Of a DNA stretch of 64,000 nucleotides, positions 9,599 to 38,728 are shown piece after piece. The stretch is taken from positions 290,681 through 354,680 of IMG/VR virus record IMGVR_UViG_3300032236_000747; one strand, 5' to 3'. A program made the position numbers and the translations under genes. Under the pieces are notes generated by a model. The model saw only the letters and a program-made list of their open reading frames with translations. It did no database searches and was not told the DNA's origin. How positions within the stretch are numbered: the first letter of the stretch is position 1; each line of letters begins with the position of its first letter.

Positions 9599-12500
9599 AT
9601 GGCCTTCATTCAGAAGTTATTCACAACACTACAAAACTACGATAATGGCGATACTCGTATTGGCGAGCTCAACCGTATTTGGTATGACTCTAATCGTAAT
9701 GCCTTCTACATATCTGACGGCCAAACAGAAGGCGGTATACTAATTGGTGGCGGTGGTGGTGGCGGAACTTACACACTATTAACAGCAACTACTACCCGCC
9801 TAGGTGGTGTTAGAATCGGTGCTGGTATTCAAGTTGATTATCGCGGTGTTATTAGTGTAAACACATCTACGCTAGCAGGACCACAAGGTCCTAAAGGCGA
9901 CACTGGTCCTAAAGGGGATACTGGAACACAAGGATCAGTTGGGGCTCAAGGCGATCCCGGTATAGGAGTTCCTGTCGGCGGCGTTGCTGGACAAGTGCTG
10001 GCTAAAATTGACGGTGTTGATTATAATACATATTGGGTTGATCAAACTGGTGGTACAGGTAATGGTAGCGTAATACAAAGTGATATAGCTCCTACTCCTG
10101 CAAATACTACGACTCTTTGGTATGATACAGTAGGCGGTCGTAGTTATGTGTATTATTACGGGGGTTGGGTTGACGCTAGCCCAGGAATAGGCGGGATACC
10201 TGGACCAAAAGGCGATACAGGTACGCAAGGACCTACTGGACTACAAGGAGACATAGGTCCAAAAGGTGATACAGGTACTCAGGGACTAATAGGTCCAATG
10301 GGTCCGAAAGGCGATACAGGTACTCGAGGCCTTACTGGTGATATAGGCCCAGTTGGACCAAAGGGAGATACCGGAACACAGGGATTGATAGGACCAACAG
10401 GACCTAAAGGGGACACTGGTACACAAGGTATTCAAGGACCGATTGGTCTAACTGGAAACACTGGAACACAGGGTATACAAGGAATTCCGGGCGAAGGCGT
10501 TCCGGTAGGCGGAACTGCCGGGCAAGTATTAACCAAGATTGACGGTGTTGATTACAATACACACTGGGTTGATGCTAATTTTTCTAGTTCAACTGCTACT
10601 GCTGGTGTAAGTGATATTACCGCAGGGACAGGAACTTATGTATCTGCTAATACAGGTTCAGTGAGCATCTGGGTTGATCCAAACGTAGTCGAAGGCACGG
10701 TAGCTCCTGCATCTACAGCTTCATTTTGGTATGATACTAATGTAGGTCGACTATTCATATATTATAATGGGTCTTGGATTGATGCTAGTCCGGGAACTAC
10801 TGGTATACCTGGTCCAAAGGGAGACACTGGAACTACTGGTCCAACTGGACTACAGGGAGATATTGGCCCTAAAGGTGATACCGGTACAGCAGCTACCCTA
10901 GTTATAGGAACAGTTACCTTAGGAACTTATACAAGTGTAATTAATGTAGGCGATCAATACAATGCTGTGTTTGACTTTGTATTACAGCAAGGACCTAAAG
11001 GTGATGCTGGGCTCAAAGGCGACACAGGAACCACAGGTGCAACTGGCGCACAAGGACCTAAAGGTGATACTGGCACCCAAGGAATACAAGGCATACAAGG
11101 TTTTCAGGGAATACAAGGCATTAAAGGTGATACTGGCACCACCGGAGCAACTGGTGCTACAGGCAGTGTTGGTCCAAAAGGTGATACCGGTACACAGGGT
11201 ATTCAAGGTATTCAGGGACCAAAAGGCGATACAGGAACTACCGGCGCACAAGGTATCCAAGGCATACAAGGTATCCAGGGCGTAACGGGTAGTACAGGTA
11301 CTCAAGGACCAAAAGGCGATACTGGCTCAATTGGCATAGCTACATTAAATTTAGGCACAGGTACATACGGCACACTAACATCGCAGACATTAAGTTTATG
11401 GATCGGCCAAGATGTTTCTGCTACAAGTAATGTAACATTTAACTCTGTGGCTATTAGTAATCTTGGTAGCATTTTATCATCTCAAGTAAACATTGATGCA
11501 TTTATTACAGTCTATACCTTAACTAATGTTGTTGACTATAGTTCTACTGCTACTTTGGCATCGGGTGTTTACGGTAACATCAATGGAGTTCAACCTCCGT
11601 GGACTGTATTTGATCTAAGTCCCGGACCTTCAGGTACTCCTGTAAGTACTATTGCTATTAACGATAAACTAACAGGTGCTGGTATTATTCCTAGTACCGT
11701 AGAAGATCGCGGCACCGGAACTTATGCATCTTATGTTATTGTTAATTTAGATCTAGCTGGCCTAGGACAGATACAACCTTTAGTTGGGGCGGCATTTAAC
11801 CTTGTACGCCCACTACAAAAAGCTGGCTTGGACATTACTACACAAAACAACACAGACATTTTCCTAAACAGCAATGGTCTAGGTGATGTACTAGTTAACA
11901 CCAACATTCTACCAGTTGCCACCAATGTAAGTAATTTAGGAAGTCCAGACTTTAGATGGAAGAGTTTGTATGTTGGCCCAGGTACTATCTATGTCTTAGA
12001 TGAAACATTAGGCAAAGATATTAGCATTGGCGCTCGTGACGGACTACTATATGTACAAAACGGTGCTGGGCTTGTAGTAGGTGAGTTTACTCTTATTGAC
12101 AATCAGATTAAGATTGCCAATCCCGATCGTGATATTATTATTGGAACTACTACTGCTACAGGTAGTGTAGTATTAAATCGTCCTATTAGAGTTAACACAC
12201 TAGCAGGACAAACTTCATTTAGTGTAGATAGACTAGGTCTAACTACAATCCACCCACTTATCTCAATGAGCTCTACTCAATCAGCATTGAATATTGTGGG
12301 CAACACTAGCGGACTACAGCAACCTCGTAATTTTAACGATACAATGTTGCAGATTACAGGTGCAGACAATACTGCTACTCGTGTAAGTTTAGATTCATTT
12401 GGTACAGGCACATATCCAGTTATTGCTGGTCGTCAAGCAGGCGGAACAGTAGCGTCTCCAAGTCAAACAAAATTAAACGATACGCTGTTAAGATTTAGTG

Positions 12501-15500
12501 CCCAGGGTTGGGGGACTACAGGATATGTAAGTACTATTGCTCGTATAAACATGCGAGCTCTACAAGATTTTACTGACACCGCCGCAGGCACAGGAATACG
12601 TTTTCAATTAACTCCTATAAACACAACTACAATACAAACTGTTACAGTAGACATCACTGCTACAGGTATAAGTTTTGTTGGTAACTCTATTGGCGGAATC
12701 ACATTCAGTAACAATGACAGACTAACTTACTTCCCAACACCTGTGGGACAAGCCGGCTTATATTTAAAGTCAGATGGTACTACAATGAGTTGGCAAACAG
12801 GAGGTGCTGGCGCCAAAGGTGATACCGGTACAGCAGCTACAATTACAATAGGTACTGTTACAGTTTCTACAACTACAGCAAGTGTAACCAATGTAGGTAA
12901 CTCTAGTAGTGCTATACTTAATTTTGTCTTACAACAAGGTCCACAAGGTATCCAGGGAGCTACCGGTAGCACAGGAACACAGGGACCCAAAGGCGATACA
13001 GGTACTACTGGCGCACAGGGCATACAAGGTATTCAAGGCATTCAGGGAGCAACCGGAACCAGTGCGACAGTTATGGTTGGACTAGTTACTACAGGTTCAA
13101 CAGCTCTAGTTACTAACACAGGAACAAGTGCTAACGCGGTACTTAACTTCCAAATTCCATGGATACCGGGCCCACAGGGCGCAACTGGTGCTACGGGAAG
13201 TACAGGTACACAAGGACCTAAAGGGGATACCGGAACACAGGGTATTCAAGGACCTATTGGGCCAACTGGAACATTTACAGGTAGTGTAGTTACTCTAGCA
13301 TCTGCTGATACTGCGGCACTGACTTATACATCATCAACTGGCATATTCTCATTCACTCCTAACAATGTCTATAAGACATTGTCTAGTTTAAGTGATGTTA
13401 ATGTTCCAGCACCCGGCAACAATCAAGTACTAACCTGGAGTACCGGCACTAATCGTTGGATTCCTACAACAGTAAACGGTGTTGGTGTTCCTATTACAGG
13501 TATTGCCTACTATGGTACATTCTACGACGTGGGCGCGGATCAAACAGCGCCACTGACAACCAGCAGTTATGTTGTAAGAATAGATCACACTGACGGTAGC
13601 AATGGCATCAGCATTGTTGACAATAATCAAATAACATTTGCCTACGGCGGAACTTATGAAGTAGAGTTTAGCATACAGTTCCAAAATACAGATACTAAAG
13701 ATGCCACTGTTAGTGTATGGTTTAGAAAGAACGGCGCAGACATAGCAGATTCAAACAGCATATTCACAGCGCCAAGTAAGCAAAACGGTAATGGATTCTT
13801 GATAGCAGTCACTCCGTTTATCGTCACAGTCAACGCCGGCGACTATGTACAGATTATGTGGTCAAGTGACAATACAGTAACCAAAATCGTCACAACAGCG
13901 GCTGGAACTACCCCAACTGTTCCACGCACACCGGGCGTTATTATCACAGTGGTGCCGGTTACCTCAGTGGTTATCCCAGGCACCGTTGAGAGTTTAACAG
14001 TAACGGGCAATGCCAGTGCCAATAACTTTATCTCAGCGTATCTGCCCATAGTGTCAAGTGGTACTACTACTGTGCTGTCTGTTACAAGTCCGCACTATAT
14101 ATCAGTAAGTGGTGTATCAACACAGACTATCAAACTGCCAAACGCTACCTTATTGACTGTAGGACAAAGTTACAAGATTGACAACAACTCAAGTGGCAAT
14201 GTTTACATACAAGATGCTACTGGTGCTCAGATTGGCGGTGCTCTGTTACCGGGTGCGGCCACTGAAGGTAGAGTTATTAATGTAGGTACAACAGCAGGCA
14301 CATGGGATGGTTGGAACTATGTTCCTGGCAATGTATCATTTGGCACAAGTCAGATGGTGTTTACTGGCGGGACCATTGTAGCCAGCACATTCACTGGTAG
14401 TTTAGTAGGTACTGCTACCACAGCAACCTACGCACAATCATTTAATACTGCGACTCTAGTAACTACTGCTGTTAGTGCTACTACTGCCACTAACGCTGGT
14501 TACGCATATTCATTTAATACAAACACAGTCGTAACTACAGCAGTTACAGCAACTAACGCTGGGTATGCCTACTCGTTCAACACATCAACCCTAGTATTGA
14601 AAGCAACTACAGCTACACTGGCACAAACTGTTACTGCGGCCGCACAGCCTGCTATCACAAGTGTAGGAACACTAACAAGTCTATCACTTCAGGGCAGTAT
14701 AACATTTAATGATGCCACTACACAATCTACAGCATGGACTGGTAGTACATATAGAATAATCAAAGTTGCTGACGGTTTTGGAGTAGGCCTACCATTCCAG
14801 TCTTATGTAACTGCTGATACCAGCACAGGCATTATTGTTTCCGCATTAACTGGTATTCCAGCAAGCCCTACATATAAAACTTGGACATTTGGGTTTGACG
14901 GAGTCTTAACATTCCCAGATAACTCAACACAAACAGTTGCGTGGAATACAAGCACAGCAGTTTATTATTCACAGATAAGGAATGCGCCTTCTACTACAGG
15001 CACAGCAGTATTCAATATTGTTAGTGCTACTAACATAACAGTTGGCGGAACAACAATACAAAACTTGTTTAGTGTATCAACAGCTACAGTGAGCAATACT
15101 GCTACTAGTCTTGTCTATAATACTAGCACCGGTGTTTATACATTTACACCATTTAGTCTAAACACCAGTACACTAATGGCTCGAGCTGTCACTGTTACAA
15201 GTTCAACACAAGCGGCTATTACCGCACTTGGTACATTAACGTCTCTATCAGTTAGCGGAGCATCAACAGTTAGTGGGCTTGCTACCTTTAACTATACAGG
15301 CGGTGGATCAACTTCAACTATTTCTGTCAGTGGGCAAAATAGCAAAGGTGGCGCACTATATCACGACTTCCTAAGTGCTACTAACGGGTTAGCCACTGCT
15401 ACCAATGCTACCAAATATTTCCGTCTAAACAACGTAGGCACCTTAGAAATATTGAATAGTGCTTATAATGCAACTGTATTCTCAGTAACTGATAACGGAT

Positions 15501-16525
15501 ATATTGCTATCAATGCGGCATCCGGTGTTTCAAACGGTTTGCCTGGTAATAATGCTATAGCGATGAATAACAACAGTTACATCTACGATGATGGTAACTA
15601 TCACCTTACAAGTAAGTCTGGTAGCATTTGGATCAATGCCAACGGTGGTAATGATGTTAATATAAACACACAAGTCCCTAGTGGTACTATGCCAGGCGGG
15701 TTGAATGTACAGGGTGCTATAACAAGTCAAGGCTCTGGTACAGCCGCTACATCGTTTATATCAGGTGTAAACGCATATAGTGGCGTAGCACTACAGCTGA
15801 CTCCAAACGGTACAGGTGCGGCAAACCAAGCTATTCGTGATACATCAAGTGCGGCAAGCACAATGTATTTTGACGTTAATACTGGTGGTAGTGCTCACGG
15901 CCAATTCCAATTTAGATCAAGCAATGCGTTTAGTCAACTCTTGGTTGTAAGTAATAGTGCCGTAACAGTTAACAGACAAATGTTGATAGGTGGTGGTAGT
16001 CAAGGCGCCTATGTTACTATTAACGGAACAAACACTTACAACATCAATGGGCCTTTTGGATACTTAAACGGTGGCGGCGCAGGCGCCATCAACAGCAGTG
16101 GATCAACGGGTAATCAAGGGTTTTCATTACAATGTAGTGGACGTATTCAAGCTAATGAAGTTGACGTTCCTTCAGACGAACGATTAAAAGACATACAGGG
16201 CACTATTCCTTTAGATAAGGCACTACAGTTTGTTCGAGCCGTAGATGGTATCTTGTATACTTGGAAGCCAGGATTTGGCGACAACGGATTAAAGTCAGGG
16301 TTTAATGCTCAAGGTGTATACAAAGCTGGATTTGATCATATGGTTGTTCCTGTGCCAAATGATCGTGTAGCGGGTTCAACTGATGCTGATGGATTTACAA
16401 GCCCAGATAAGTTCCAATTAAGTTTAAACTATCAAGAAGCTATCCCATATCATCACGAAGTTATCAAGCACTTGCTAGATCGTATTGAGCAGCTAGAAGC
16501 TACAGTAGCCAAGTTAACTAAATAA
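9599..16525 (+). CDS. Giant collagen-like tail fibre with C-terminal peptidase S74 intramolecular chaperone
   Basis: Several G-X-Y tracts (GPKGDTG repeats), duplicated modules, C-terminal SDERLKDI...GFNAQ...LNYQ and coiled coil. Confidence 0.9.
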   Translation: MAFIQKLFTTLQNYDNGDTRIGELNRIWYDSNRNAFYISDGQTEGGILIGGGGGGGTYTLLTATTTRLGGVRIGAGIQVDYRGVISVNTSTLAGPQGPKGDTGPKGDTGTQGSVGAQGDPGIGVPVGGVAGQVLAKIDGVDYNTYWVDQTGGTGNGSVIQSDIAPTPANTTTLWYDTVGGRSYVYYYGGWVDASPGIGGIPGPKGDTGTQGPTGLQGDIGPKGDTGTQGLIGPMGPKGDTGTRGLTGDIGPVGPKGDTGTQGLIGPTGPKGDTGTQGIQGPIGLTGNTGTQGIQGIPGEGVPVGGTAGQVLTKIDGVDYNTHWVDANFSSSTATAGVSDITAGTGTYVSANTGSVSIWVDPNVVEGTVAPASTASFWYDTNVGRLFIYYNGSWIDASPGTTGIPGPKGDTGTTGPTGLQGDIGPKGDTGTAATLVIGTVTLGTYTSVINVGDQYNAVFDFVLQQGPKGDAGLKGDTGTTGATGAQGPKGDTGTQGIQGIQGFQGIQGIKGDTGTTGATGATGSVGPKGDTGTQGIQGIQGPKGDTGTTGAQGIQGIQGIQGVTGSTGTQGPKGDTGSIGIATLNLGTGTYGTLTSQTLSLWIGQDVSATSNVTFNSVAISNLGSILSSQVNIDAFITVYTLTNVVDYSSTATLASGVYGNINGVQPPWTVFDLSPGPSGTPVSTIAINDKLTGAGIIPSTVEDRGTGTYASYVIVNLDLAGLGQIQPLVGAAFNLVRPLQKAGLDITTQNNTDIFLNSNGLGDVLVNTNILPVATNVSNLGSPDFRWKSLYVGPGTIYVLDETLGKDISIGARDGLLYVQNGAGLVVGEFTLIDNQIKIANPDRDIIIGTTTATGSVVLNRPIRVNTLAGQTSFSVDRLGLTTIHPLISMSSTQSALNIVGNTSGLQQPRNFNDTMLQITGADNTATRVSLDSFGTGTYPVIAGRQAGGTVASPSQTKLNDTLLRFSAQGWGTTGYVSTIARINMRALQDFTDTAAGTGIRFQLTPINTTTIQTVTVDITATGISFVGNSIGGITFSNNDRLTYFPTPVGQAGLYLKSDGTTMSWQTGGAGAKGDTGTAATITIGTVTVSTTTASVTNVGNSSSAILNFVLQQGPQGIQGATGSTGTQGPKGDTGTTGAQGIQGIQGIQGATGTSATVMVGLVTTGSTALVTNTGTSANAVLNFQIPWIPGPQGATGATGSTGTQGPKGDTGTQGIQGPIGPTGTFTGSVVTLASADTAALTYTSSTGIFSFTPNNVYKTLSSLSDVNVPAPGNNQVLTWSTGTNRWIPTTVNGVGVPITGIAYYGTFYDVGADQTAPLTTSSYVVRIDHTDGSNGISIVDNNQITFAYGGTYEVEFSIQFQNTDTKDATVSVWFRKNGADIADSNSIFTAPSKQNGNGFLIAVTPFIVTVNAGDYVQIMWSSDNTVTKIVTTAAGTTPTVPRTPGVIITVVPVTSVVIPGTVESLTVTGNASANNFISAYLPIVSSGTTTVLSVTSPHYISVSGVSTQTIKLPNATLLTVGQSYKIDNNSSGNVYIQDATGAQIGGALLPGAATEGRVINVGTTAGTWDGWNYVPGNVSFGTSQMVFTGGTIVASTFTGSLVGTATTATYAQSFNTATLVTTAVSATTATNAGYAYSFNTNTVVTTAVTATNAGYAYSFNTSTLVLKATTATLAQTVTAAAQPAITSVGTLTSLSLQGSITFNDATTQSTAWTGSTYRIIKVADGFGVGLPFQSYVTADTSTGIIVSALTGIPASPTYKTWTFGFDGVLTFPDNSTQTVAWNTSTAVYYSQIRNAPSTTGTAVFNIVSATNITVGGTTIQNLFSVSTATVSNTATSLVYNTSTGVYTFTPFSLNTSTLMARAVTVTSSTQAAITALGTLTSLSVSGASTVSGLATFNYTGGGSTSTISVSGQNSKGGALYHDFLSATNGLATATNATKYFRLNNVGTLEILNSAYNATVFSVTDNGYIAINAASGVSNGLPGNNAIAMNNNSYIYDDGNYHLTSKSGSIWINANGGNDVNINTQVPSGTMPGGLNVQGAITSQGSGTAATSFISGVNAYSGVALQLTPNGTGAANQAIRDTSSAASTMYFDVNTGGSAHGQFQFRSSNAFSQLLVVSNSAVTVNRQMLIGGGSQGAYVTINGTNTYNINGPFGYLNGGGAGAINSSGSTGNQGFSLQCSGRIQANEVDVPSDERLKDIQGTIPLDKALQFVRAVDGILYTWKPGFGDNGLKSGFNAQGVYKAGFDHMVVPVPNDRVAGSTDADGFTSPDKFQLSLNYQEAIPYHHEVIKHLLDRIEQLEATVAKLTK

Positions 16526-16549: not shown

Positions 16550-17371
16550 ATGAAGAAGATTTTATTTGCACTATTGCTAGCAGCCACAAGCCTAGCACAC
16601 GCTTGGGACCAACGTGCCCCTAATCCAGTACAAGCCTGTGCTGTCCATAGCCCATATGGCTTTGCTCAAACAGCTCGTACAGCACAACCAATCTGCAGAG
16701 AGGCCTATCTAGTAGCATATGATGCACCAGTTAAAATTCCGGCTTATGTCGCTTATACACTACAGCCACAGAACGCACTTGGATGCTTTCCTCGCACTAA
16801 TGCTTTTGTCGCTGATCAGTCAATCACTGGTGGAGCTCGCCCTGACGACTACGCAGGAACAGGCTACGACAAAGGACACGCAGCCCCAGATGGAGATTTG
16901 TCTTGGTCTGCACAAGTAGAATACGAAAGTTTTTTAATGACAAACATGTATCCACAACACGGTTCTTTAAACAGGGGAATCTGGAAGTTGTTAGAGACAT
17001 CAGTCCGCGGATGGGCCGTCCAACTGAACCAACCATTTACTATATACGTTGGCGCTTTATATGGCGCTGGTGATCCTACTATTGGTAATGGCGTTATCGT
17101 TCCGCACGGTTTCTACAAGATTGTTATTAATAACACAACAGGTCAAGTTGCAGGCTGGATGTTCCCACATACCAAACCTTATGTTAATCTAGGCAACGAC
17201 CTAACCAAGTTCCGTGCTACTATAGCACAGATACAACAGCAAGCAGGAGTACAATATAAGTTTCCTGCCAAGGCTGTTGAACTACAACCTGGTCAAGAAT
17301 GGCCGGTCAACTTTGGCGCACTAACAAACGCTAAAAGAGCAAAGTGCGGCGCTAATGCATCCGCAGATTAA
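16550..17371 (+). CDS. Secreted DNA/RNA non-specific endonuclease (NucA/EndA beta-beta-alpha-metal family)
   Basis: Sec signal peptide MKKILFALLLAATSLAHA; YDKGHAAP and NMYPQHGSLNRGIWKLLE motifs. Confidence 0.9.
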   Translation: MKKILFALLLAATSLAHAWDQRAPNPVQACAVHSPYGFAQTARTAQPICREAYLVAYDAPVKIPAYVAYTLQPQNALGCFPRTNAFVADQSITGGARPDDYAGTGYDKGHAAPDGDLSWSAQVEYESFLMTNMYPQHGSLNRGIWKLLETSVRGWAVQLNQPFTIYVGALYGAGDPTIGNGVIVPHGFYKIVINNTTGQVAGWMFPHTKPYVNLGNDLTKFRATIAQIQQQAGVQYKFPAKAVELQPGQEWPVNFGALTNAKRAKCGANASAD

Positions 17372-18480: not shown

Positions 18481-19422
18481 ATGAGACCAGAACGATTAAG
18501 ATTATTTGCTCAACTAGCAGAGCAGTTAATGGAAGCTAGTACCGCCGGCGATTTAGTTAAGCGCCATCCAGGTGGTAATGAGATCATGCAGAAGTTGCAT
18601 AGAGATCTAGGACTACCACACAACGTAACATGGTCCGAACTAGGCATGGGAGAACGTTTCCATTGGACTCCGTTTAAAGAAACCAAGTTCGGTAGCTGGG
18701 TTATTGTTAAAGGACCAAAAGGCACAGGAGCCATTCAAGCTCAGAAAGGCGGCGGCGCATATCTAGGCATGGCTAGCACAGGTGGCCCTATTGAAACAAT
18801 CAGAGATGACCGTGGTGGTAACATTGTAGACTTTCTAGTAAGACATCTAGGCAAGGATCTAAGAAGATATAGCGGAGACACAGTAGGACCAGCGTCGACA
18901 TATCAACGAACTGATAATCCAAGACAAATGACATATCCTGAAAAAACAAAATACAGGAAAGATCTTAAAACACTGGGCGGTTCAAAGAAAACCATGGATG
19001 CTGATGCCATACTAAAAAGATTTAAACCTCTATGGAAATCTGGTGTAGTAAAAGCTATGGCTGACATTCAAGGTTTTGTTTCTCAACAAATCAAAGCAGG
19101 TGCCTATGCCAAAGCTGAAAGTAAAATTCAAAGATTAAAAAAACTTCAATCAATAATGAATATTTTAGACAATGATGAAGAACTACCACCATCAAATGAT
19201 TACAGTGATAGTAATATTCTTTCATCTGCTGTTAAGAGTGCTATTACTCTCGGAGCAGCGCACTACTATCCAGAGTTAACAGGTAATGTAACTAAAAACG
19301 GTTACTCTTATCGTGCAGGTAATGCTGAAGGTACACAAAAGTTATTACAAGATATCGCAGGAGGTGATACAAGTAAAATGTTTACAGTAGCACATTTCTT
19401 TAGAAGGAGTTTAATATCATGA
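18481..19422 (+). CDS. Hypothetical late protein, putative internal head protein
   Basis: LAE/LME motifs near N-terminus; TAAATA-N4-ATG. Confidence 0.55.
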   Translation: MRPERLRLFAQLAEQLMEASTAGDLVKRHPGGNEIMQKLHRDLGLPHNVTWSELGMGERFHWTPFKETKFGSWVIVKGPKGTGAIQAQKGGGAYLGMASTGGPIETIRDDRGGNIVDFLVRHLGKDLRRYSGDTVGPASTYQRTDNPRQMTYPEKTKYRKDLKTLGGSKKTMDADAILKRFKPLWKSGVVKAMADIQGFVSQQIKAGAYAKAESKIQRLKKLQSIMNILDNDEELPPSNDYSDSNILSSAVKSAITLGAAHYYPELTGNVTKNGYSYRAGNAEGTQKLLQDIAGGDTSKMFTVAHFFRRSLIS

Positions 19423-20459
19423 AGCTAGGACAGATTGTTACAGAAGCCAACATAGCCCTTAAGGTATTAAAAGACCCTAAACTACCTAAGCAGTTATACA
19501 TTGCTTTTACTCATGATAGTAGTCTTCCTGGAAACATTATTGCTAGACTAGGAACAAAGCCTACAGTAGAGCAAGTAGTTAAAGCATGGAGTGATCTAAT
19601 AGATAGTTCTCTAAGAGATAGTAACTACGGTGACCTAAGTTCTAATGGTAAGTTTGATGATTGGTTGTTAAGATTGTATATATCCGGTCAAGTTGATTAT
19701 GAAGATATCAACGGAGAAGCAGGAGATGCTCTTGGACTGTGGAGTGCCCTAAGCAGAAGAGGTAGACTTGATGTTAAAGATCAAGACTTCAACAAGTTTA
19801 AAGATATCCATAGCCTTAGAGCAGCAATGAATAAACCTCAGTATCGTGCTGAACTAGAAAGAATTAAAAACTCGGAAATTATTGAAAAACACAAGCGTGC
19901 TAGAAAAGAAGTTGTGTTAATCGACGATGACAGATTCCATGTTATTCTACCATTGAACTATGGTGCTTGTTATACATTTAATAACTCCGAAGGTATTCAA
20001 GCAAACTTCTGTACTGGAGGTAGTAACGGTCTACACTGGTTCCAGAACTATGCTCCTTATACACCTATTATCAGTATTCTAGATAAAACTAATATGAATA
20101 ATAAGTGGGGCAAATGGCAGTTACACGCATGGCCAGCTTTTGGTGCTGCCGGACAGTTAGTTAATGCTGAACAAAATAACAGAGGTGATCTACCGGGAAA
20201 TGATCGTAAGTTTGCTGAACTATTTCCGGGATTAATGAAGAGAATAGTAGCAGCTCTGGCAGAGAAGGGCCCTGAGATTGAACAACTCAGCGGTGAACCG
20301 GATTCTACAGGAACTACACTAATTCGCGGAGGCTACGATATACAAGACGCTATTTCTCGTATTAAACAAACTTTTCCAGCTAGCTATGCTTCGGAAGAGC
20401 CCGGAGCAGAAGAACCGGGCGCCGGCGAACCAGCACCAGGCGGCGAAGAGTTGTACTAA
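19419..20459 (+). CDS. Hypothetical late protein, putative internal head protein
   Basis: MKLGQIVTEA N-terminus; ATGA overlap with upstream gene. Confidence 0.55.
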   Translation: MKLGQIVTEANIALKVLKDPKLPKQLYIAFTHDSSLPGNIIARLGTKPTVEQVVKAWSDLIDSSLRDSNYGDLSSNGKFDDWLLRLYISGQVDYEDINGEAGDALGLWSALSRRGRLDVKDQDFNKFKDIHSLRAAMNKPQYRAELERIKNSEIIEKHKRARKEVVLIDDDRFHVILPLNYGACYTFNNSEGIQANFCTGGSNGLHWFQNYAPYTPIISILDKTNMNNKWGKWQLHAWPAFGAAGQLVNAEQNNRGDLPGNDRKFAELFPGLMKRIVAALAEKGPEIEQLSGEPDSTGTTLIRGGYDIQDAISRIKQTFPASYASEEPGAEEPGAGEPAPGGEELY

Positions 20460-20565: not shown

Positions 20566-20579
20566 CAATAAATACTATT

Positions 20580-21863
20580 ATGAAAATACATCATCTCTTA
20601 AATGAAACTGTAGAAACTTATACTACTGTAGATGAGTTCGTGGACATTATGAAGGATTTTTTACCTTTGGCCATGCATCATCTTAAGATAGATGCGCTAC
20701 CTCACATTAGGTTAGAAAAGTATATCAAAGACTCACATCAGCCTACGTTTGGCAAATACGTTAACGAAGAAAATGTGATACACGTAGGCATTGAAAATCG
20801 TCACCCATTAGATGTTCTAAGAACACTAGCACATGAACTAGTACACTTTAAACAAGGAACAGAGAATAGATTAGATGCCAAGAGCGGCGAAACTGGCAGT
20901 CCTATAGAGAATGAAGCACACGAGGTAGCTGGTATTATCATGCGTCATTTTGGTAAAAGATATCCTCATTATTTTACAGACACAGCTATTACTATTTCCG
21001 AAGATTGGAACAAAGTTAATCACCACGATAAAACTAACGGCCTAAGTCGTAAAGCAGTCAAAGCCTATCGTCGTGAACATCCAGGTAGTAAACTACAAAC
21101 AGCAGTTACTACTAAACCTAGTAAGTTAAAGGCGGGTAGTAAGGATGCTAAACGCCGTAAAAGTTTCTGTGCTCGTATGAGTGGCAACAAAGGCCCAATG
21201 AAAAAGCCTAATGGTAAACCTACTCCTAAAGCATTGGCCTTGCGCCGTTGGAACTGTGAGAGCATTGAAGAAATGCGTCAGCTGATCGAAACAGCTGAAC
21301 AGGTTATCATGCAGGAAAAATGGAGCAAGAAGTATAAGAGTAGTATCAACTGCTCACATCCTAAAGGCTTTAGTCAACGTGCCCATTGTGCCGGTAAGAA
21401 GAAGCACAATGAAAGTCATGACGTTATGGAACATGTATGCCCTGATTGCGGTATGTGCCAAACACATGGTACACTTAATGAGATTAAGAAAGGCGCCAAA
21501 GACTCAAACGGCTTTACCAAGTGCTGGCCAGGACATCATGCCGCTGGTACTAAGAAAGGTAAAAATGGTGGACAGGTTCGTAACTGTGTGCCTAACGAAA
21601 GTGTGGCGGAAGGTGGTGGAGCTCAACAAGCAGCCATAGCTATTGCTAAACGTGAAAGCGGCAAGTATACCAAAGACGGCAAGCGAATAAAAGAAAACTT
21701 TGCTGACGGAAAGCATCCCGAAGACAAAGGCGACAGCAAACGCTATGGGGTTCCTACTAAAGCAAGCGTGAGCACACTACGCAAGGTAGCACATCAAGGT
21801 GGTCGTAAAGGACAACTAGCTCATTGGATGGCTAATATGAAAGCAGGCAAAGCCAAAAAATAA
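20580..21863 (+). CDS. Modular late protein: HExxH metallopeptidase-like module plus basic/Cys-His modules separated by x-x-E sites
   Basis: TLAHELVHFKQ; KRRKSFCARM, CSHPKGFSQRAHC, CPDCGMC, KCWPG..NCVP modules; LNE, ISE, MQE, LNE, VAE, IKE linkers. Confidence 0.7.
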   Translation: MKIHHLLNETVETYTTVDEFVDIMKDFLPLAMHHLKIDALPHIRLEKYIKDSHQPTFGKYVNEENVIHVGIENRHPLDVLRTLAHELVHFKQGTENRLDAKSGETGSPIENEAHEVAGIIMRHFGKRYPHYFTDTAITISEDWNKVNHHDKTNGLSRKAVKAYRREHPGSKLQTAVTTKPSKLKAGSKDAKRRKSFCARMSGNKGPMKKPNGKPTPKALALRRWNCESIEEMRQLIETAEQVIMQEKWSKKYKSSINCSHPKGFSQRAHCAGKKKHNESHDVMEHVCPDCGMCQTHGTLNEIKKGAKDSNGFTKCWPGHHAAGTKKGKNGGQVRNCVPNESVAEGGGAQQAAIAIAKRESGKYTKDGKRIKENFADGKHPEDKGDSKRYGVPTKASVSTLRKVAHQGGRKGQLAHWMANMKAGKAKK

Positions 21864-22476: not shown

Positions 22477-23040
22477 TTACTTTAATATTGCAAGTGGTTT
22501 AGCAAAACGTTTGCCCCAATAATCCATAACTGCTATATTACTGTCGGTAGCTTCTGTGAAGTAGGTCTGTAAACTAGGATGGTCTAAGTGAATATTAGCA
22601 AGTGTTTCGCCGTCCTCACTCTCCATATGAATGCCGTGTTTAGTACATAAATGCTTAATGACTCTGTTTGTACTTAAACAGACCATAGTACCTTCTAGGA
22701 AGTTATGTGTCCGGCACCATTGGATAGCACGTTTCATAAGATGTGTACCCATACCTTGCCCTTGATATTCTTTAAGAACACTAAAGGCTAGTTCCATTTC
22801 ACTTTTCTTGTCAATGGCAATGTGTGCCACTGCTATCAAATCTAGGTTATTGTCTTCTATGGCAAATAGGATATTGTGCTCATAATCCTTTTCCCACCCA
22901 TTGCATAGGTTATCGATAACACTATCAGACAGAGGATTGGCAAAACGCAGGGTCTTGCTTTCTCTGTCTAGTGCTTTTAGATGTTTGCGATACTTTGGAT
23001 ACTCATGATGAAGTACCCGCCTTACAGTGGTAAATGGCAT
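22477..23040 (-). CDS. GNAT family N-acetyltransferase
   Basis: ELAFSVLKEYQGQGMGTHLM acetyl-CoA binding motif A. Confidence 0.9.
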   Translation of the reverse strand: MPFTTVRRVLHHEYPKYRKHLKALDRESKTLRFANPLSDSVIDNLCNGWEKDYEHNILFAIEDNNLDLIAVAHIAIDKKSEMELAFSVLKEYQGQGMGTHLMKRAIQWCRTHNFLEGTMVCLSTNRVIKHLCTKHGIHMESEDGETLANIHLDHPSLQTYFTEATDSNIAVMDYWGKRFAKPLAILK

Positions 23041-24966: not shown

Positions 24967-25248
24967 ATGGCATCAGTAGCAGAACGAGTAAGCGTGCTAG
25001 AAACGCAGGTATTAAACATAGACGAAAAAATTGACGACATCAAAGAAGATGTTAAACAAAATCATACAGATATCAAGACCCAACTTACTGATATGTATAA
25101 TGCGTCTTGCACCCAACACTCCGAGTTAGCTAAAAAAATAGGCGACATTGAAAAGTTTAAGAACAAATGGATGTATATGATCATTGGCGGTGTTGCAGTA
25201 CTAGGTTACCTAGCAGGACATTCGGGAATACTTAAAATACTTTCATGA
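24967..25248 (+). CDS. Coiled-coil protein with C-terminal TM helix (holin/XhlA-like, tentative)
   Basis: ERVSVLETQV coiled coil; WMYMIIGGVAVLGYLAG TM segment. Confidence 0.5.
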   Translation: MASVAERVSVLETQVLNIDEKIDDIKEDVKQNHTDIKTQLTDMYNASCTQHSELAKKIGDIEKFKNKWMYMIIGGVAVLGYLAGHSGILKILS

Positions 25249-25958
25249 GAGCCTACGAAATATTCCTAGAAGATGTAACTGATCAGATCCAACCTAATCA
25301 AGCTGTAGGTAGTGGACCTGGTAAGATTGCACAGACTCCAGGAAATAAAGCAGCAAAGCCTGCTATGCCTAGTGCTACAACAATAGCAAATGCTGCTCAA
25401 GGAGCAGGAACCACACCGGATGCTACACAACCGGTTGGACAAAAACAAATGATGGGACAAAATGTCCCTGGACAACAACAAACAGGATCTGCTACACAAG
25501 GAACTGTAGGTACTATGGGTACAGCAGGAAGACCAGGTACACCCGATCCCAAGAGTGGCATGACACAAACACCTGCTCAACAACAAAGTCAGTTACAAAA
25601 AGCGCAGAGTCAGCTACAGCAAAAACAACAACAAGATCAAATAGCTCAGAAAAAGACTGATCTAACCAAAGACCTTAATCAACTTAAAACTGTAGCACCT
25701 AGTATTAATGTTTCCAAGGATGCAGATGCTCTAACAAAACCAGCAGATGAAAGATCCCCACAGGACCTTAAAAACATGGCAGGTATCACGAATGATATTG
25801 CCAGCATCATTGGACAACAGAACGGAACACAACAACTAAAACAGTTGTTAATGAAAATGAAAACCCTCGATGCTCAAAAGCAACAAGCACAGCAAGCAGA
25901 TAATCAAGCAGAGTTAGATAGTCTATCTCAACAAAATACCCCAACTCAGGCTAGATAA
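25245..25958 (+). CDS. Gln-rich low-complexity putative internal head protein
   Basis: MRAYEIFLED N-terminus; Q/P/G-rich body. Confidence 0.55.
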   Translation: MRAYEIFLEDVTDQIQPNQAVGSGPGKIAQTPGNKAAKPAMPSATTIANAAQGAGTTPDATQPVGQKQMMGQNVPGQQQTGSATQGTVGTMGTAGRPGTPDPKSGMTQTPAQQQSQLQKAQSQLQQKQQQDQIAQKKTDLTKDLNQLKTVAPSINVSKDADALTKPADERSPQDLKNMAGITNDIASIIGQQNGTQQLKQLLMKMKTLDAQKQQAQQADNQAELDSLSQQNTPTQAR

Positions 25959-26642: not shown

Positions 26643-28052
26643 ATGATTACAAACGATTTAAACGCCAAGTTAACAGCGGCCAAACTTAATGAAAATATGT
26701 ACAAGAAGTTTGGCACAAAGATTAACTTTGACAAATACACGAGAGAAGAACTAGAAAACTATCGTAATCTTCTACGTACTAATATTCATCAAGTAGAAAC
26801 TAGCAGCAACTTTAATGATTTGTTAGCCAACGAAACATATCAAAAAGACAAATACATGATGGGTGTATTAAACACTAAGATCAAAGAGATGTTAGGTGAA
26901 GCTAGGATCCTATCAGAAAAGAGCAAAACACAGAAGCAAGCACGTACGATGGCAGCAGCCGCACACGATCCAAAGTTTGCTAAGAAAGTGGGAATCAAAC
27001 AAAGCGTGGCCAAGGAATTCAACAAGGCCGATACAGGAACTAAAAAATTGAGCCAAGCTATGAAAAACAAAAAAACAACCGAAGCCCTAAAAGGCAACCA
27101 ATATAAAATAGATGCCAACAAAAACGGAAAAATAGACGGCGACGACTTTAAAAAGTTACGTGCTAAAAAGACCGAAGGCGCAATGGACACAGTTAAGGCA
27201 GTAGGCAAGAAAGTTGCTGGCGCTGTTAACAAAGCCATCGGTCATGGAAGCGATGAGGAAATGCGCAAAGATCTACAGAAAAAAGTAGGAGTAGCACAAA
27301 CTGGTAAGAAACCAGCAGCTCCTGTCAAAGAAGCCTCTAAGAAAAAGAATGACGGCAATCTGGCCAACAATGCCAAACCATACGACAAAGTAACACGCGG
27401 TGATGTTATCTCCGGTCGCCTTGGTAAAGATGAAATGGGTGGCAAGAGGAAAACAACTATGAAAAAGAAAGCAACTGAATCACAACTAATCTTCCGTAAC
27501 CACGTTAAGATTGTTAATGAAAGTCTAGCATACTTGCTAAACGAAGATGAAGAAGGCAAAGCCAAAGCCATTACCGCTGCCAGTGATATGGTCAATGACT
27601 TTACAACATGGATGCAACGTGTTGGTCAATACCAAACTAAATCTATGATTGAACTAGCTGATAGCATCCGTGCTGAGTTTGGTCAAGCCGAAGCAGAAGC
27701 ATTTAAGAATGCAGTTGCTCCTGCTCTACAAGCTACACTAGAAACAATGACACAACAACGCGAAGCTATTAGTCATGCTGTTGCTGTGCTAGCAGGTGAA
27801 GCCAGCGACATGGACCAAATGGGTGGAATGGGCGGCGGCGAAGTTCCTGACATGACTGGCGGTGCCGATGAGTTCTCTAGCCCATCAGGACAAGACAGCA
27901 TGAATGCAGGCGACGAGTTTGGTGCCAGTGATGCTGCTGCAGGTGGAATGGAAACCAGCGGACGTGAACTACGTGAAAGCCATAAGCGTGCTGCTGCCAA
28001 GAGCCGTATTGCTGAATCACATGCCATCATGAGTATCCTAAGCGGAAAATGA
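26643..28052 (+). CDS. Putative prohead core/scaffold-like protein with many x-x-E sites
   Basis: LNE, LSE, TTE, KTE, VKE, ATE, VNE, LNE, LRE, IAE motifs separating basic segments; late promoter at 26613. Confidence 0.6.
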   Translation: MITNDLNAKLTAAKLNENMYKKFGTKINFDKYTREELENYRNLLRTNIHQVETSSNFNDLLANETYQKDKYMMGVLNTKIKEMLGEARILSEKSKTQKQARTMAAAAHDPKFAKKVGIKQSVAKEFNKADTGTKKLSQAMKNKKTTEALKGNQYKIDANKNGKIDGDDFKKLRAKKTEGAMDTVKAVGKKVAGAVNKAIGHGSDEEMRKDLQKKVGVAQTGKKPAAPVKEASKKKNDGNLANNAKPYDKVTRGDVISGRLGKDEMGGKRKTTMKKKATESQLIFRNHVKIVNESLAYLLNEDEEGKAKAITAASDMVNDFTTWMQRVGQYQTKSMIELADSIRAEFGQAEAEAFKNAVAPALQATLETMTQQREAISHAVAVLAGEASDMDQMGGMGGGEVPDMTGGADEFSSPSGQDSMNAGDEFGASDAAAGGMETSGRELRESHKRAAAKSRIAESHAIMSILSGK

Positions 28053-38049: not shown

Positions 38050-38728
38050 ATGTTTTCTTAGAAGCCCATTGTTTAACTGCTGGATAGTATGTTGTAAACA
38101 GTTGATGACGTTTTTTGATTTCAGCAGCAGGCGCAGCTTTTCCATTAATGGCTCTTGTAACTGAAGCAGTATCAGCAAAGTCCTTTATACGTCTTTTAAC
38201 ATTTTGATCCCAAAACCATTTAGCAATCTTTGCCGCTTCGTGGGGATCTGCTGCCTTACTAGGATGTTCAACATAATATGATTCATCGCCATGCACGCCT
38301 GCGCCAGCAGCAATATAGTTACCCTTGCCTGTTAACTGAATGAATCCACGTCCGGCATATTCCAAAGCATCATTTGCGCCTTGGTTACCTGTGCTACGTG
38401 CATATTTGTGAGCTGCTTTATTAGGCCGACCTATCTCGCCGAGGTGTTTAAAGTTACCTGTTTCTGCGCTACACTGTGCTAGAAACTGTGCTAGTTCTGT
38501 TGGCTCGGTCATACCGCTGTTAATAGCATGTGAAGACAGTATTTTACGTGCTACATCGGCATCAACTTTTGGTGCTTGAACTAGTGGTTGCACTTTTGTA
38601 CTACGTGGATCTATTTTTTGGGGATGTTGAACAGGCTTGGCTTGTGCTATACCTGCTGCCATTGCGGCTGCTCCACCAAGGAATCCCCTGCGTGTTAAAT
38701 CTTCTCTAGTAATTTCGTATATTCGCAT
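38048..38728 (-). CDS. Glycoside hydrolase family 19 (endolysin/chitinase-like) with twin-arginine-like N-terminus
   Basis: FLAQCSAETG and YAGRGFIQLTGKGNY motifs; TRRGFLGG; TAAATA-N4-ATG. Confidence 0.88.
   Translation of the reverse strand: MRIYEITREDLTRRGFLGGAAAMAAGIAQAKPVQHPQKIDPRSTKVQPLVQAPKVDADVARKILSSHAINSGMTEPTELAQFLAQCSAETGNFKHLGEIGRPNKAAHKYARSTGNQGANDALEYAGRGFIQLTGKGNYIAAGAGVHGDESYYVEHPSKAADPHEAAKIAKWFWDQNVKRRIKDFADTASVTRAINGKAAPAAEIKKRHQLFTTYYPAVKQWASKKT

Follow-up and report, generated by a model that had tools for sequence, protein, structure and literature searches.

The gene considered here, ORF 20580-21863, lies within a window of 64,000 nucleotides (positions 290,681 to 354,680 of IMG/VR record IMGVR_UViG_3300032236_000747), which is part of the 354,680-bp genome of a T4-related aquatic jumbo phage. 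It is the first-start ORF of its frame and encodes a protein of 427 aa, in which a short leader is followed by a predicted zincin-like domain and a string of small, mostly very basic modules (Table 1). The gene lies far from the head genes, among nuclease, GNAT and exonuclease genes, and is accompanied by several neighbors whose products carry a similar leader. A megablast of the region against cultured phages found no match.

Table 1. Coordinates of the features at the locus, with the observations specific to each (a caret marks a junction)
Position	Strand	Feature	Observations
16550..17371	+	Endonuclease_NS gene, synteny anchor of the variable locus	PF01223 at 2.2e-38; the same gene lies directly upstream of the DUF6321 polyprotein gene in three other metagenomic lineages
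19419..20459	+	Neighboring gene, leader MKLGQIVTE (346 aa, no family)	Leader PSSM score 11.6
20568..20574	+	ATAAATA motif, 5 nt upstream of the ATG	Matches the core of the T4 late promoter; role here unproven
20580..20606	+	Leader MKIHHLLNE (aa 1-9), predicted capsid-targeting sequence ending in an L-x-E cleavage site	Leader PSSM score 18.5
20607..21002	+	Predicted zincin-like metallopeptidase domain (aa 10-141), ending in ISE141	HELVH at aa 85-89 (nt 20832-20846); AF2 pLDDT 84.6 on aa 1-141
21003..21269	+	Module A (aa 142-230), DUF6321	pI 10.8, 2 Cys; PF19846 61.1 bits against a cut-off of 28.5, over aa 148-224; in 81 unique internal contexts preceded by Glu in 100% and by a hydrophobic P3 in 89%
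21270..21317	+	Acidic linker EMRQLIETAEQVIMQE (aa 231-246)	Sites IEE231, LIE237 and MQE246; looks like a fossil leader (MRQLIE..)
21318..21482	+	Module B1-B2 (aa 247-301), KWSKKY..CSHPKGFSQRAHC..CPDCGMC..LNE	pI 8.9, 5 Cys and 6 His; in 46 unique contexts preceded by Glu in 100% and by a hydrophobic P3 in 93%
21483..21611	+	Module B3 (aa 302-344), IKKGAKD..CWPGHH..RNCVPNESVAE	pI 9.7; in 36 contexts the site before IxKGxKD has Glu in 97% and L/I/V/M at P3 in 97%, with a variable P2
21612..21695	+	Module C1 (aa 345-372), GGGAQQAAIAIAK..IKE	pI 10.0; usually preceded by the linker GVAE or SVAE
21696..21863	+	Module C2 (aa 373-427), NFADGK..HWMANMKAGKAKK, followed by the stop codon	pI 10.4; preceded by Glu in 19 of 19 contexts; AF2 models a helical hairpin with pLDDT 83-93 over aa 380-427
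25245..25958	+	Neighboring gene, leader MRAYEIFLE (237 aa, Gln-rich)	Leader PSSM score 17.8
26643..28052	+	Second leader-bearing gene (469 aa): 17-residue leader ending LNE17, conserved N-domain, variable basic middle with a DUF3008-like module, conserved acidic C-domain	LNE17, IKE82, LGE86, VNE293 and LNE301 invariant

Sequence features of the protein

A preliminary description of the sequence had listed an HExxH module and six short basic or Cys/His modules bounded by ISE, MQE, HNE, LNE, VAE or IKE. What it observed is borne out, since HELVH, the strings KRRKSFCARM..RRWNC, KWSKKY..CSHPKGFSQRAHC, CPDCGMC, KCWPG..NCVP, AQQAAIAIAK and NFADGK..HWMANMK, and the triplets ISE141, MQE246, HNE278, LNE301, VAE344 and IKE372 are all present. 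[LIVM]-x-E occurs 11 times in the protein, against 5.0 +/- 2.0 in 20,000 shuffles (P=0.005), and 8 times against 2.1 expected in residues 139-427 (P=0.0002). The N-terminal LNE9, which ends the leader, and the additional sites IEE231 and LIE237 in the acidic linker had been overlooked, whereas HNE278 keeps its Glu in homologs but never has a hydrophobic P3, and is thus not a canonical gp21-type site.

The HExxH part is modelled as a folded domain of about 130 residues and not as a short module. H85, E86, H89, E110, N111 and H114 are invariant in 12 homologs, and with them HELVH and the downstream ENEAHE. The best Foldseek matches in the PDB are minigluzincins, Wss1, IrrE/PprI and CapP, all of them weak (E>=0.013, TM 0.3-0.5), and a profile search against PDB sequences gave only E>=0.11, so no peptidase family was assigned. 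Pfam Peptidase_M78 (PF06114, 14.1 bits against 22), MPTase-PolyVal (PF18818, 12.4 against 27.5 bits) and DUF3920 all score below threshold, although 14% of the members of two related Atlas clusters carry PF06114. An hhalign comparison of the zincin profile with PBECO4 gp455, a virion protein with HExxH and the start MKYNQLQE, matched only the HExxH motif at a probability of 2.7%, and homology was rejected. No other enzymatic domain was found in the protein. Most of the small modules are modelled with low confidence (pLDDT below 60), and metal or DNA binding by them is at most inferred.

Predicted targeting leader and prohead protease

In T4, the first 10 residues of IPIII suffice for targeting, and processing by gp21 follows the rule L/I-X-E (PMC9026906); Alt, for example, is cut at ITE-6 and LTE-619 (PMC5694885). 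The leader MKIHHLLNE and those of its relatives (MKAKEFITE, MRANEFLTE, MKINELLNE) resemble MKTYQEFIAE, with which T4 IPII and IPIII start (NC_000866). With a PSSM built from 58 homolog leaders, nine first-Met ORFs of the genome score 11.6 or more, and the next best scores 5.1. A strict DNA pattern for the leader found nothing useful in PBECO4, T4, S-CREM2 or B23. The genome encodes one gp21-type prohead protease (Peptidase_S77, PF03420, 2.3e-26, 90.1 bits against a cut-off of 27), which lies outside the window next to the scaffold and MCP genes (G000:C1:141584-142012, G000 being the record of this genome). The MCP of the genome has YLAE^A in its N-terminal region, and T4 gp23 is cut at FLTE^A in the presumed equivalent region.

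Upstream sequences were also considered. ATAAATA lies exactly 4-5 nt before the ATG of 16 genes of the genome, six of which have leader-like N-termini, and occurs 52 times on the + strand and 12 times on the - strand. It was rejected as a general partner of leader-bearing genes, because it precedes only 4 of 54 such genes in other loci. The motif GGTCTAAAATAA before the MCP and scaffold genes looked like a late promoter, but is the shared coding end (..GLK and stop) of the preceding genes and was likewise rejected.

Module order and junctions in homologs

Among 119 close homologs the modules occur in 22 different orders, and the same module starts with the same residues (DWNKVN.., KWSQKY..) whether it follows a leader or another module. 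In 211 unique internal junction contexts before six module types, P1 is Glu in 96%, and a hydrophobic residue (L/I/V/M/F) occupies P3 in 88%, P2 in 7% and P4 in 20%, in agreement with the gp21 rule, although these contexts are not phylogenetically independent. In the query, only the inter-module sites keep the motif in homologs, whereas sites inside the zincin fold do not. The coincidence of module boundaries with Glu sites in homologs had been set beforehand as a point on which the idea could fail, and the boundaries do coincide with [LIVMF]-x-E. AF2 places the junctions in low-confidence segments, so they are probably exposed. Some homologs carry a complete embedded leader at a junction like that of the acidic linker (...MKATEFVTE^KWTQK).

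A natural control is provided by the DUF6321 module. In 20 of 20 leader-bearing DUF6321 ORFs, [hydrophobic]-x-E precedes the domain, whereas none of fifteen ORFs without a leader-like N-terminus has it; these are mostly stand-alone proteins of about 90-170 aa (MAK^TAAW.., GGS^TAAW..), plus one 2190-aa ORF (locus L039). All four S77-positive records are of the Glu type, though in L052 the Glu lies four residues upstream and L091 was not classified. The two complete S77-negative records whose ORF was classified (G011, G021) lack the Glu, as does G010 (82% complete), with G013 left unclassified. Pelagibacter podophage versions also lack both leader and Glu. In cyanophage S-CREM2, ORF137, which carries DUF6321 after MNE^, and ORF136, which starts MQTFSMFFSE^, were found in CsCl-purified virions by mass spectrometry (PMC10665884, Table 3), ORF137 with only 4 peptides and 4.1% coverage, without peptide positions. 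The DUF3008-like module also occurs in 201phi2-1 gp383, which is not annotated as a virion protein and thus gives no support.

The preliminary description had ascribed the same architecture to ORF 26643-28052. This ORF exists as described and shares the grammar of leader and sites, but it belongs to a colinear, full-length conserved family and is not a shuffled string. Its homologs start MKTFDFTNTVTAATLNE^SMFKK, compared with MKTFKEFTSTTTPVSTITE^A in T4 IPI.

A proposed head-internal cargo polyprotein

We propose that ORF 20580-21863 most likely encodes a head-internal cargo polyprotein, a reading to which we assign a probability of roughly 0.6. In this view, the 9-residue leader acts like the T4 capsid-targeting sequence and brings the protein into the prohead core, where the gp21-type serine protease would cut after Glu at the leader and at the [L/I/V/M]-x-E joints (E9, E141, E231/E237/E246, E301, E344, E372). 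This would release a zincin-like metallopeptidase of roughly 130 residues and four to five small, very basic peptides (pI 8.9-10.8, several with Cys/His pairs), which would stay with the packed DNA and are probably injected with it. Our analysis establishes the leader, the site grammar, the protease gene, the module shuffling, the absence of leader and Glu in protease-less phages within the records classified above, and the virion association of one cultured relative; targeting, cleavage, DNA association and injection, as well as any effector or peptidase activity, are inferred, in the absence of proteomic or N-terminal sequence data for this phage or any direct ortholog, and the specificity of the protease is assumed from T4. 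DUF6321 also works in phages without this protease, so its function does not depend on processing. New polyproteins probably arise by fusion of neighboring leader-bearing genes, because complete leaders are found embedded at junctions. The earlier interpretation, namely that gp21-type cleavage liberates several DNA-binding or effector peptides from a cassette-like polyprotein with swappable modules, is largely supported by comparison, although not in every part.

More tentatively, aquatic jumbo T4-related phages (about 350 kb, Rak2/121Q/GAP32 MCP lineage) and cyanomyoviruses may use a plug-and-play cargo grammar, in which any module placed behind a T4-like targeting leader or an L/I/V-x-E joint is packed into the head and freed by the prohead protease. 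Thousands of the conserved hypothetical basic Cys/His motifs of marine viromes (DUF6321, KWSQKY..C, CWxGY..NCV, NFADGK.., DUF3008-like) would then be head-internal, DNA-associated peptides made from shuffled polyproteins, and candidate building blocks of the unexplained inner body of this phage lineage.

If the proposed reading is correct, a large class of uncharacterized aquatic phage proteins gains a location and a maturation route, as about 7,000 database proteins matched the query at E<=0.001 among the 8,000 candidates scored. It would also show that the T4 capsid-targeting leader and cleavage rule are conserved far outside the T-even phages, and that a dsDNA phage uses a polyprotein strategy with exchangeable modules. 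Furthermore, it offers concrete candidates for the inner-body proteins of 121Q/phAPEC6-type jumbo phages, which are currently unidentified (PMC7247149), and the leader and joints are short, portable signals that could be tested directly for packaging foreign proteins into such capsids. In the literature searched, no paper mentions DUF6321, and none links capsid-targeting sequences to cyanophages beyond one review.

Alternative explanations

It remains possible, though unlikely, that only the leader is removed and that the multi-module protein stays in one piece in the head and is injected intact, as a small polyvalent protein, the internal [LIVM]-x-E motifs being leftovers of the leaders of once-separate genes. 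Such fusion relics are expected, given that complete leaders are embedded at some junctions and that leader-bearing genes sit in tandem 1-2 nt apart, and polyvalent virion proteins that travel as one chain are known (PMC5512222). However, the motif is kept at junctions that do not look like leaders (GVAE^, NLKE^, ALDE^, SINE^), and P1 and P3 are conserved while P2 and P4-P6 vary, which points to selection on the site itself; the acidic linker moreover holds several sites in a row, as cleared propeptides do.

Less likely still, the proteins may not be virion cargo but cytoplasmic nucleic-acid-binding or regulatory proteins, with the shared N-terminus and the upstream ATAAATA forming a mobile expression and recombination cassette that promotes gene shuffling. 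The six leader-like genes preceded by ATAAATA, the shared start ATGAGAGC of the genome's leaders, the position outside the head gene cluster and the location of podophage DUF6321 among small early-type genes speak for this view. Yet the leader is conserved at the protein level, as a physicochemical pattern, across very different DNA, ATAAATA is mostly absent before leader-bearing genes of other loci, and a cassette explains neither Glu and hydrophobic P3 at internal joints, nor their absence in protease-less phages; S-CREM2 ORF136 and ORF137 are, in addition, found in virions. The least likely alternative is that the HExxH domain, or its stand-alone paralogs, cuts the string in cis or in trans, as proposed for the zincin MPTases of polyvalent proteins, without the prohead protease. 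The invariant HExxH and ENxAH motifs, the weak, below-threshold hit to MPTase-PolyVal and the N-terminal fusion of the zincin domain to various cargo enzymes in phage clusters are compatible with this idea, but about 100 of the 119 closest homologs have the same junction grammar without a zincin domain, L/I-x-E with cleavage after Glu is the documented signature of gp21-type serine proteases, and the leader itself ends in the same motif.

Relation to known systems

The closest counterparts are the T4 internal proteins IPI, IPII, IPIII and Alt, with which the protein shares a short leader of the same pattern ending in L/I-x-E, a gp21-type protease encoded by the phage, basic and hypervariable mature parts behind a conserved leader, and a gene position away from the head cluster; the family leader of ORF 26643 resembles the 19-residue IPI propeptide. 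The T4 proteins carry a single cargo with one N-terminal cut (Alt also has a C-terminal cut), whereas here several unrelated modules are strung together with a site at every joint and are shuffled among phages, and the leader is 9 residues instead of 10. The mature parts show no sequence similarity to IPI-III (no BLASTP hit better than E=0.17), which is not required, because IPs share only the CTS (PMC3012670).

The polyvalent proteins of phages and conjugative elements (Iyer et al. 2017, PMC5512222) are multi-domain, virion-delivered proteins with combinatorial architectures and an embedded zincin-like peptidase, in which they resemble the polyprotein proposed here with its predicted zincin-like domain, and were compared by those authors with viral polyproteins. 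They are, however, very large and made of enzymatic conflict domains, with processing proposed to be by their own MPTase, while the modules described here are basic peptides of 28-90 residues whose joints carry the prohead-protease motif.

In phiKZ-like giant phages (201phi2-1, phiKZ, SPN3US), many head-internal proteins, including processed inner-body and ejection proteins, are cut after Glu at a three-residue motif by a gp21-related protease, with redundant sites in propeptides, and the jumbo coliphages 121Q and phAPEC6, of the same MCP lineage as this phage, have an inner body as well. The motif in the phiKZ-like phages is S/A-x-E, the propeptides are long (over 100 aa), there is no shared sequence, and no string-of-modules design has been reported. 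Finally, the T4 prohead core proteins gp22, gp67 and gp68 are cut at several L/I-x-E sites into small peptides inside the head, but they are acidic scaffold components whose fragments mostly leave the head, and they are not shuffled cassettes.

The ORF and its genome

ORF 20580-21863 encodes 427 residues and starts at the first start codon of its frame. All features that the preliminary description listed for it are present, namely the HExxH motif (HELVH, residues 85-89), six short modules and the triplets ISE141, MQE246, HNE278, LNE301, VAE344 and IKE372. The triplet [LIVM]-x-E occurs 11 times, as compared with 5.0 +/- 2.0 in 20,000 shuffles (P=0.005), and within residues 139-427 it occurs 8 times against 2.1 expected (P=0.0002). 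The observation as originally made is therefore real and beyond chance.

The IMG/VR virus record, of which the window is the last 64 kb, comprises 354,680 bp and is rated complete by CheckV. It contains one gene of a T4 gp21-type prohead protease (Peptidase_S77, 90 bits), which is located next to a scaffold gene and a gp23-type major capsid protein gene. The capsid protein is about 70% identical to those of the Rak2/GAP32/121Q/PBECO4-type jumbo myoviruses, such as Sinorhizobium phage Phosso, Vibrio phage 2.275.O, GAP32 and Serratia BF, and carries YLAE/A in its N-terminal region (here and below, a slash marks a cut, a predicted cut or a module start). T4 gp23 is cut at FLTE/A in the equivalent region, a correspondence that does not rest on an alignment. 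The window itself holds rIIA, NrdAB and NadV/NatV-type genes as well as collagen-like tail fibre genes.

The ORF lies a few kilobases downstream of an Endonuclease_NS gene, and in three other metagenomic lineages the gene of the DUF6321 polyprotein sits directly after the same nuclease gene. Those genes carry either the short leader described below or a different leader of about 22-30 residues (MKTTVLEDKLFKMLKDNLADLWQDDLIAE/, MKKTLEQQLLENLASNLTNLWE/), which also ends in L/I-x-E. The heptamer ATAAATA, matching the core of the T4 late promoter, lies exactly 4-5 nt before the ATG of 16 genes of the record, including the ORF studied here and, for example, the genes at record positions 265169, 299969, 316635 and 344518, and six of the 16 genes have leader-like N-termini. 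The motif occurs 52 times on the + strand and 12 times on the - strand. If it acts as a late promoter, these mRNAs would be leaderless or nearly so and would have no Shine-Dalgarno sequence.

Coordinates of the ORF and of other features of the genome (window positions unless marked as record positions)
Feature	Position	Strand	Description
Tail-fibre ORF	9599-16525	+	2308 residues, many collagen-like tail-fibre repeats (PHROG tail fibre families down to 1.7e-67)
Endonuclease_NS gene	16550-17371		
ORF without family	18481-19422	+	313 residues, directly upstream of the finding, no Pfam or PHROG family
Leader-bearing ORF	19419-20459	+	346 residues, directly upstream of the finding, no Pfam or PHROG family, leader MKLGQIVTE, acidic Pro/Glu-rich tail
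ATAAATA motif	20568-20574		Before the ATG of ORF 20580-21863
ORF studied here	20580-21863	+	427 residues, leader MKIHHLLNE
GNAT acetyltransferase	22477-23040	-	1.5e-09, inside the otherwise + strand block between the two leader-bearing gene groups
Leader-bearing ORF	25245-25958	+	237 residues, leader MRAYEIFLE/, extremely rich in Gln, Thr and Pro, no family match, another candidate head-internal protein
Second ORF with leader and sites	26643-28052		17-residue leader
Glyco_hydro_19 ORF	38051-38728	-	Chitinase/lysozyme-like, 2.6e-06, leader-like start
Further small leader-bearing ORFs	record 72617 and 73009, 265181, 57916	+, +, -	Outside the window; MRAKEFIIKE/, MRAKEFIVE/, MRAQEFTKE/ and MRAKEFTTS..; several followed by His/Pro-rich motifs (GHNPDH, HTHPDHD)

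A predicted capsid-targeting leader

The protein begins with MKIHHLLNE and its homologs with MKAKEFITE, MRANEFLTE, MKINELLNE, MRAYQFITE and similar sequences. T4 IPII and IPIII, as read from NC_000866, begin with MKTYQEFIAE/A, and IPI begins with MKTFKEFTSTTTPVSTITE/A. The first ten residues of IPIII are sufficient for capsid targeting and gp21 cuts after L/I-X-E (PMC9026906), while Alt is cut at ITE-6 and LTE-619 (PMC5694885).

A position matrix built from 58 homolog leaders separates the ORF starts of the genome cleanly, since nine first-Met ORFs score 11.6 or more and the next best scores 5.1. Three of the nine, starting at 19419, 20580 and 25245, lie within 6 kb in the window. In 80 related IMG/VR loci we found 54 further leader-bearing first-Met ORFs, which are often arranged in tandem, some of them starting one or two bases after the stop of a DUF6321 gene. 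In addition, the Glyco_hydro_19 ORF starts with MRIYEITRE/DLTRRGFLGGAAAMAAG, a capsid-targeting-like leader followed directly by a twin-arginine-like signal, and a similar start, MRASEIIAEDLTRR, recurs in two IMG/VR loci (L013 and L050).

Module shuffling and conserved joints

A word search returned about 7,000 proteins at E<=0.001 among the 8,000 candidates scored, of which the best are 80-90% identical but cover only 24-69% of the query. Mapping these matches defines the modules N, A, B1-B3, C1 and C2. Among the 119 closest homologs there are 22 different module orders, none of which equals that of the query. Cultured cyanomyoviruses (S-SSM7, DSL-LC02, S-SCSM2R, P-TIM68 and S-CREM2) have 'beads on a string' ORFs of 428-994 residues, which contain the same modules among others.

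Modules defined by homology and fragments predicted after cutting
Module	Residues	Content	Predicted fragment	Predicted pI
N	1-141	Zincin-like domain	10-141	5.8
A	142-230	DUF6321 (Pfam 61 bits)	142-230	10.8
B1-B3	247-344	Cys/His-rich	B1-B2, 247-301 (five Cys)	8.9
			B3, 302-344	9.7
C1	345-372	GGGAQQAAIAIAK..	345-372	10.0
C2	373-427	NFADGK..	373-427	10.4

Each module starts with the same residues whether it follows a leader or another module, as exemplified by ..LLNE/DWNKVN, ..NLWE/DWNKVN, ..QGVAE/DWNKVN, ..FITE/KWTQKY and ..IMQE/KWSKKY. Over 211 unique internal contexts before six module heads, P1 is Glu in 96% and P3 is L/I/V/M/F in 88%, whereas P2 is hydrophobic in 7% and P4 in 20%, and this is the published gp21 rule. 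In the query, only the inter-module sites keep the motif in homologs (9, 141, 231, 246, 301, 344 and, partly, 372), while the two sites inside the predicted zincin-like fold (19 and 63) do not. HNE278, which the preliminary description had counted among the module boundaries, keeps Glu without a hydrophobic P3, and the same applies to NCE227 and PNE340.

Some homologs carry a whole leader embedded at a joint (..TRMKATEFVTE/KWTQK), and the linker of the query itself, EMRQLIETAEQVIMQE, looks like a decayed leader. Fusion of neighbouring leader-bearing genes is therefore the likely origin of the strings.

DUF6321 in phages without the protease

DUF6321 also occurs in phages without this protease. 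In the Pelagibacter podophages Skadi-1 and HTVC023P it is a stand-alone basic protein of 94-105 residues, with no leader and no Glu-Asp-Trp head. Among 61 ORFs from IMG/VR, all 20 with a leader have [hydrophobic]-x-E directly before the domain, whereas 15 ORFs without a leader-like N-terminus, mostly stand-alone proteins of about 90-170 residues plus one ORF of 2190 residues (MAK/TAAW.., GGS/TAAW.., LRK/TAAW..), have no Glu there. All four records in which S77 was found carry the Glu type, although in one of them (L052) the Glu lies four residues upstream and another (L091) was not classified. The number of complete genomes in this comparison is small: the two complete records without S77 whose ORF was classified (68 kb and 122 kb) carry the other type, with a third complete record (118 kb) left unclassified. 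CheckV completeness places the leader-type fragments in genomes of about 350 kb. The Glu is therefore not intrinsic to the domain, but travels with the leader and the protease.

Virion proteome of cyanophage S-CREM2

In Synechococcus phage S-CREM2 the DUF6321 match lies in ORF137 (108049-109521), between terS and terL, and the domain follows ..SSMNE/DWQKAN. The virion proteome of this phage, obtained from CsCl-purified particles, lists ORF137 with 4 unique peptides and 4.1% coverage, as well as ORF136, which starts with MQTFSMFFSE/, with 8 peptides and 24.1% coverage, without peptide positions (PMC10665884, Table 3).

Predicted structure

AlphaFold2 models residues 10-133 as a compact alpha/beta domain (pLDDT 84.6). 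The nearest solved folds are all small zincins, namely abylysin and selecase, Wss1, IrrE/PprI and CapP, but every match is weak (E>=0.013), and the Pfam families M78, MPTase-PolyVal and DUF3920 score below threshold. H85, E86, H89, E110, N111 and H114 are invariant. In the ESM Atlas the same domain is seen alone (122-178 aa) or N-terminal to NT5C, cytidylyltransferase-like and nucleotidyltransferase domains in phage clusters. In the full-length model the joints and most small modules have low confidence, and only C2 forms a confident helical hairpin.

Escherichia phage PBECO4 has two adjacent genes annotated as virion structural proteins, gp455, which starts with MKYNQLQE/ and contains HEAQH, and gp454, which starts with the DUF3008-like module that also occurs in ORF 26643-28052. 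An hhalign comparison of gp455 with the zincin-like domain of the query showed no homology (probability 2.7%).

ORF 26643-28052

This ORF, to which the preliminary description had ascribed the same architecture, has more than 90 full-length colinear homologs (45-63% identity) with a conserved 17-residue leader, MKTxDFNxxxTAAQLNE/SMFKK, which resembles the T4 IPI propeptide. LNE17, IKE82, LGE86, VNE293 and LNE301 are invariant and frame a variable basic middle, which holds a DUF3008-like module, an EF-hand-like motif and another small module, while the C-terminal 170 residues are acidic and conserved. It shares the grammar of leader plus sites. However, it is a conserved core-type protein with a variable insert and not a shuffled string.

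Interpretation

The best explanation, to which we assign a probability of roughly 0.6, is a capsid-targeted cargo polyprotein that the prohead protease cuts into a zincin-like peptidase and several basic peptides, which would stay with the DNA and probably enter the host with it. The leader, the conserved joints, the shuffling of the modules and the presence of the protease gene are established by the sequence comparisons, whereas targeting, cleavage, peptidase activity, association with the DNA and entry into the host are inferred. In particular, the designation of the modules as DNA-binding, as proposed in the preliminary description, rests only on their charge and on the T4 precedent. The earlier interpretation is supported in part.

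Other readings remain possible but appear less likely. The leader alone might be removed while the chain stays intact, which we consider unlikely. Still less probable is a role outside the virion, with the leader acting as an expression or recombination cassette, and the least probable is processing by the zincin-like domain.

Comparison with known systems

The closest known systems are the T4 internal proteins with their capsid-targeting sequence (PMC3012670, PMC9026906), the polyvalent proteins of Iyer et al. 2017 (PMC5512222) and the processed inner-body proteins of phiKZ-like phages. None of these systems describes strings of small modules that are joined by prohead-protease sites and shuffled between phages. 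DUF6321 is mentioned in no paper of the literature library searched. Jumbo coliphages of the same capsid lineage (121Q, phAPEC6) have an inner body whose proteins are unknown (PMC7247149), so that the leader-bearing basic modules are testable candidates for it.
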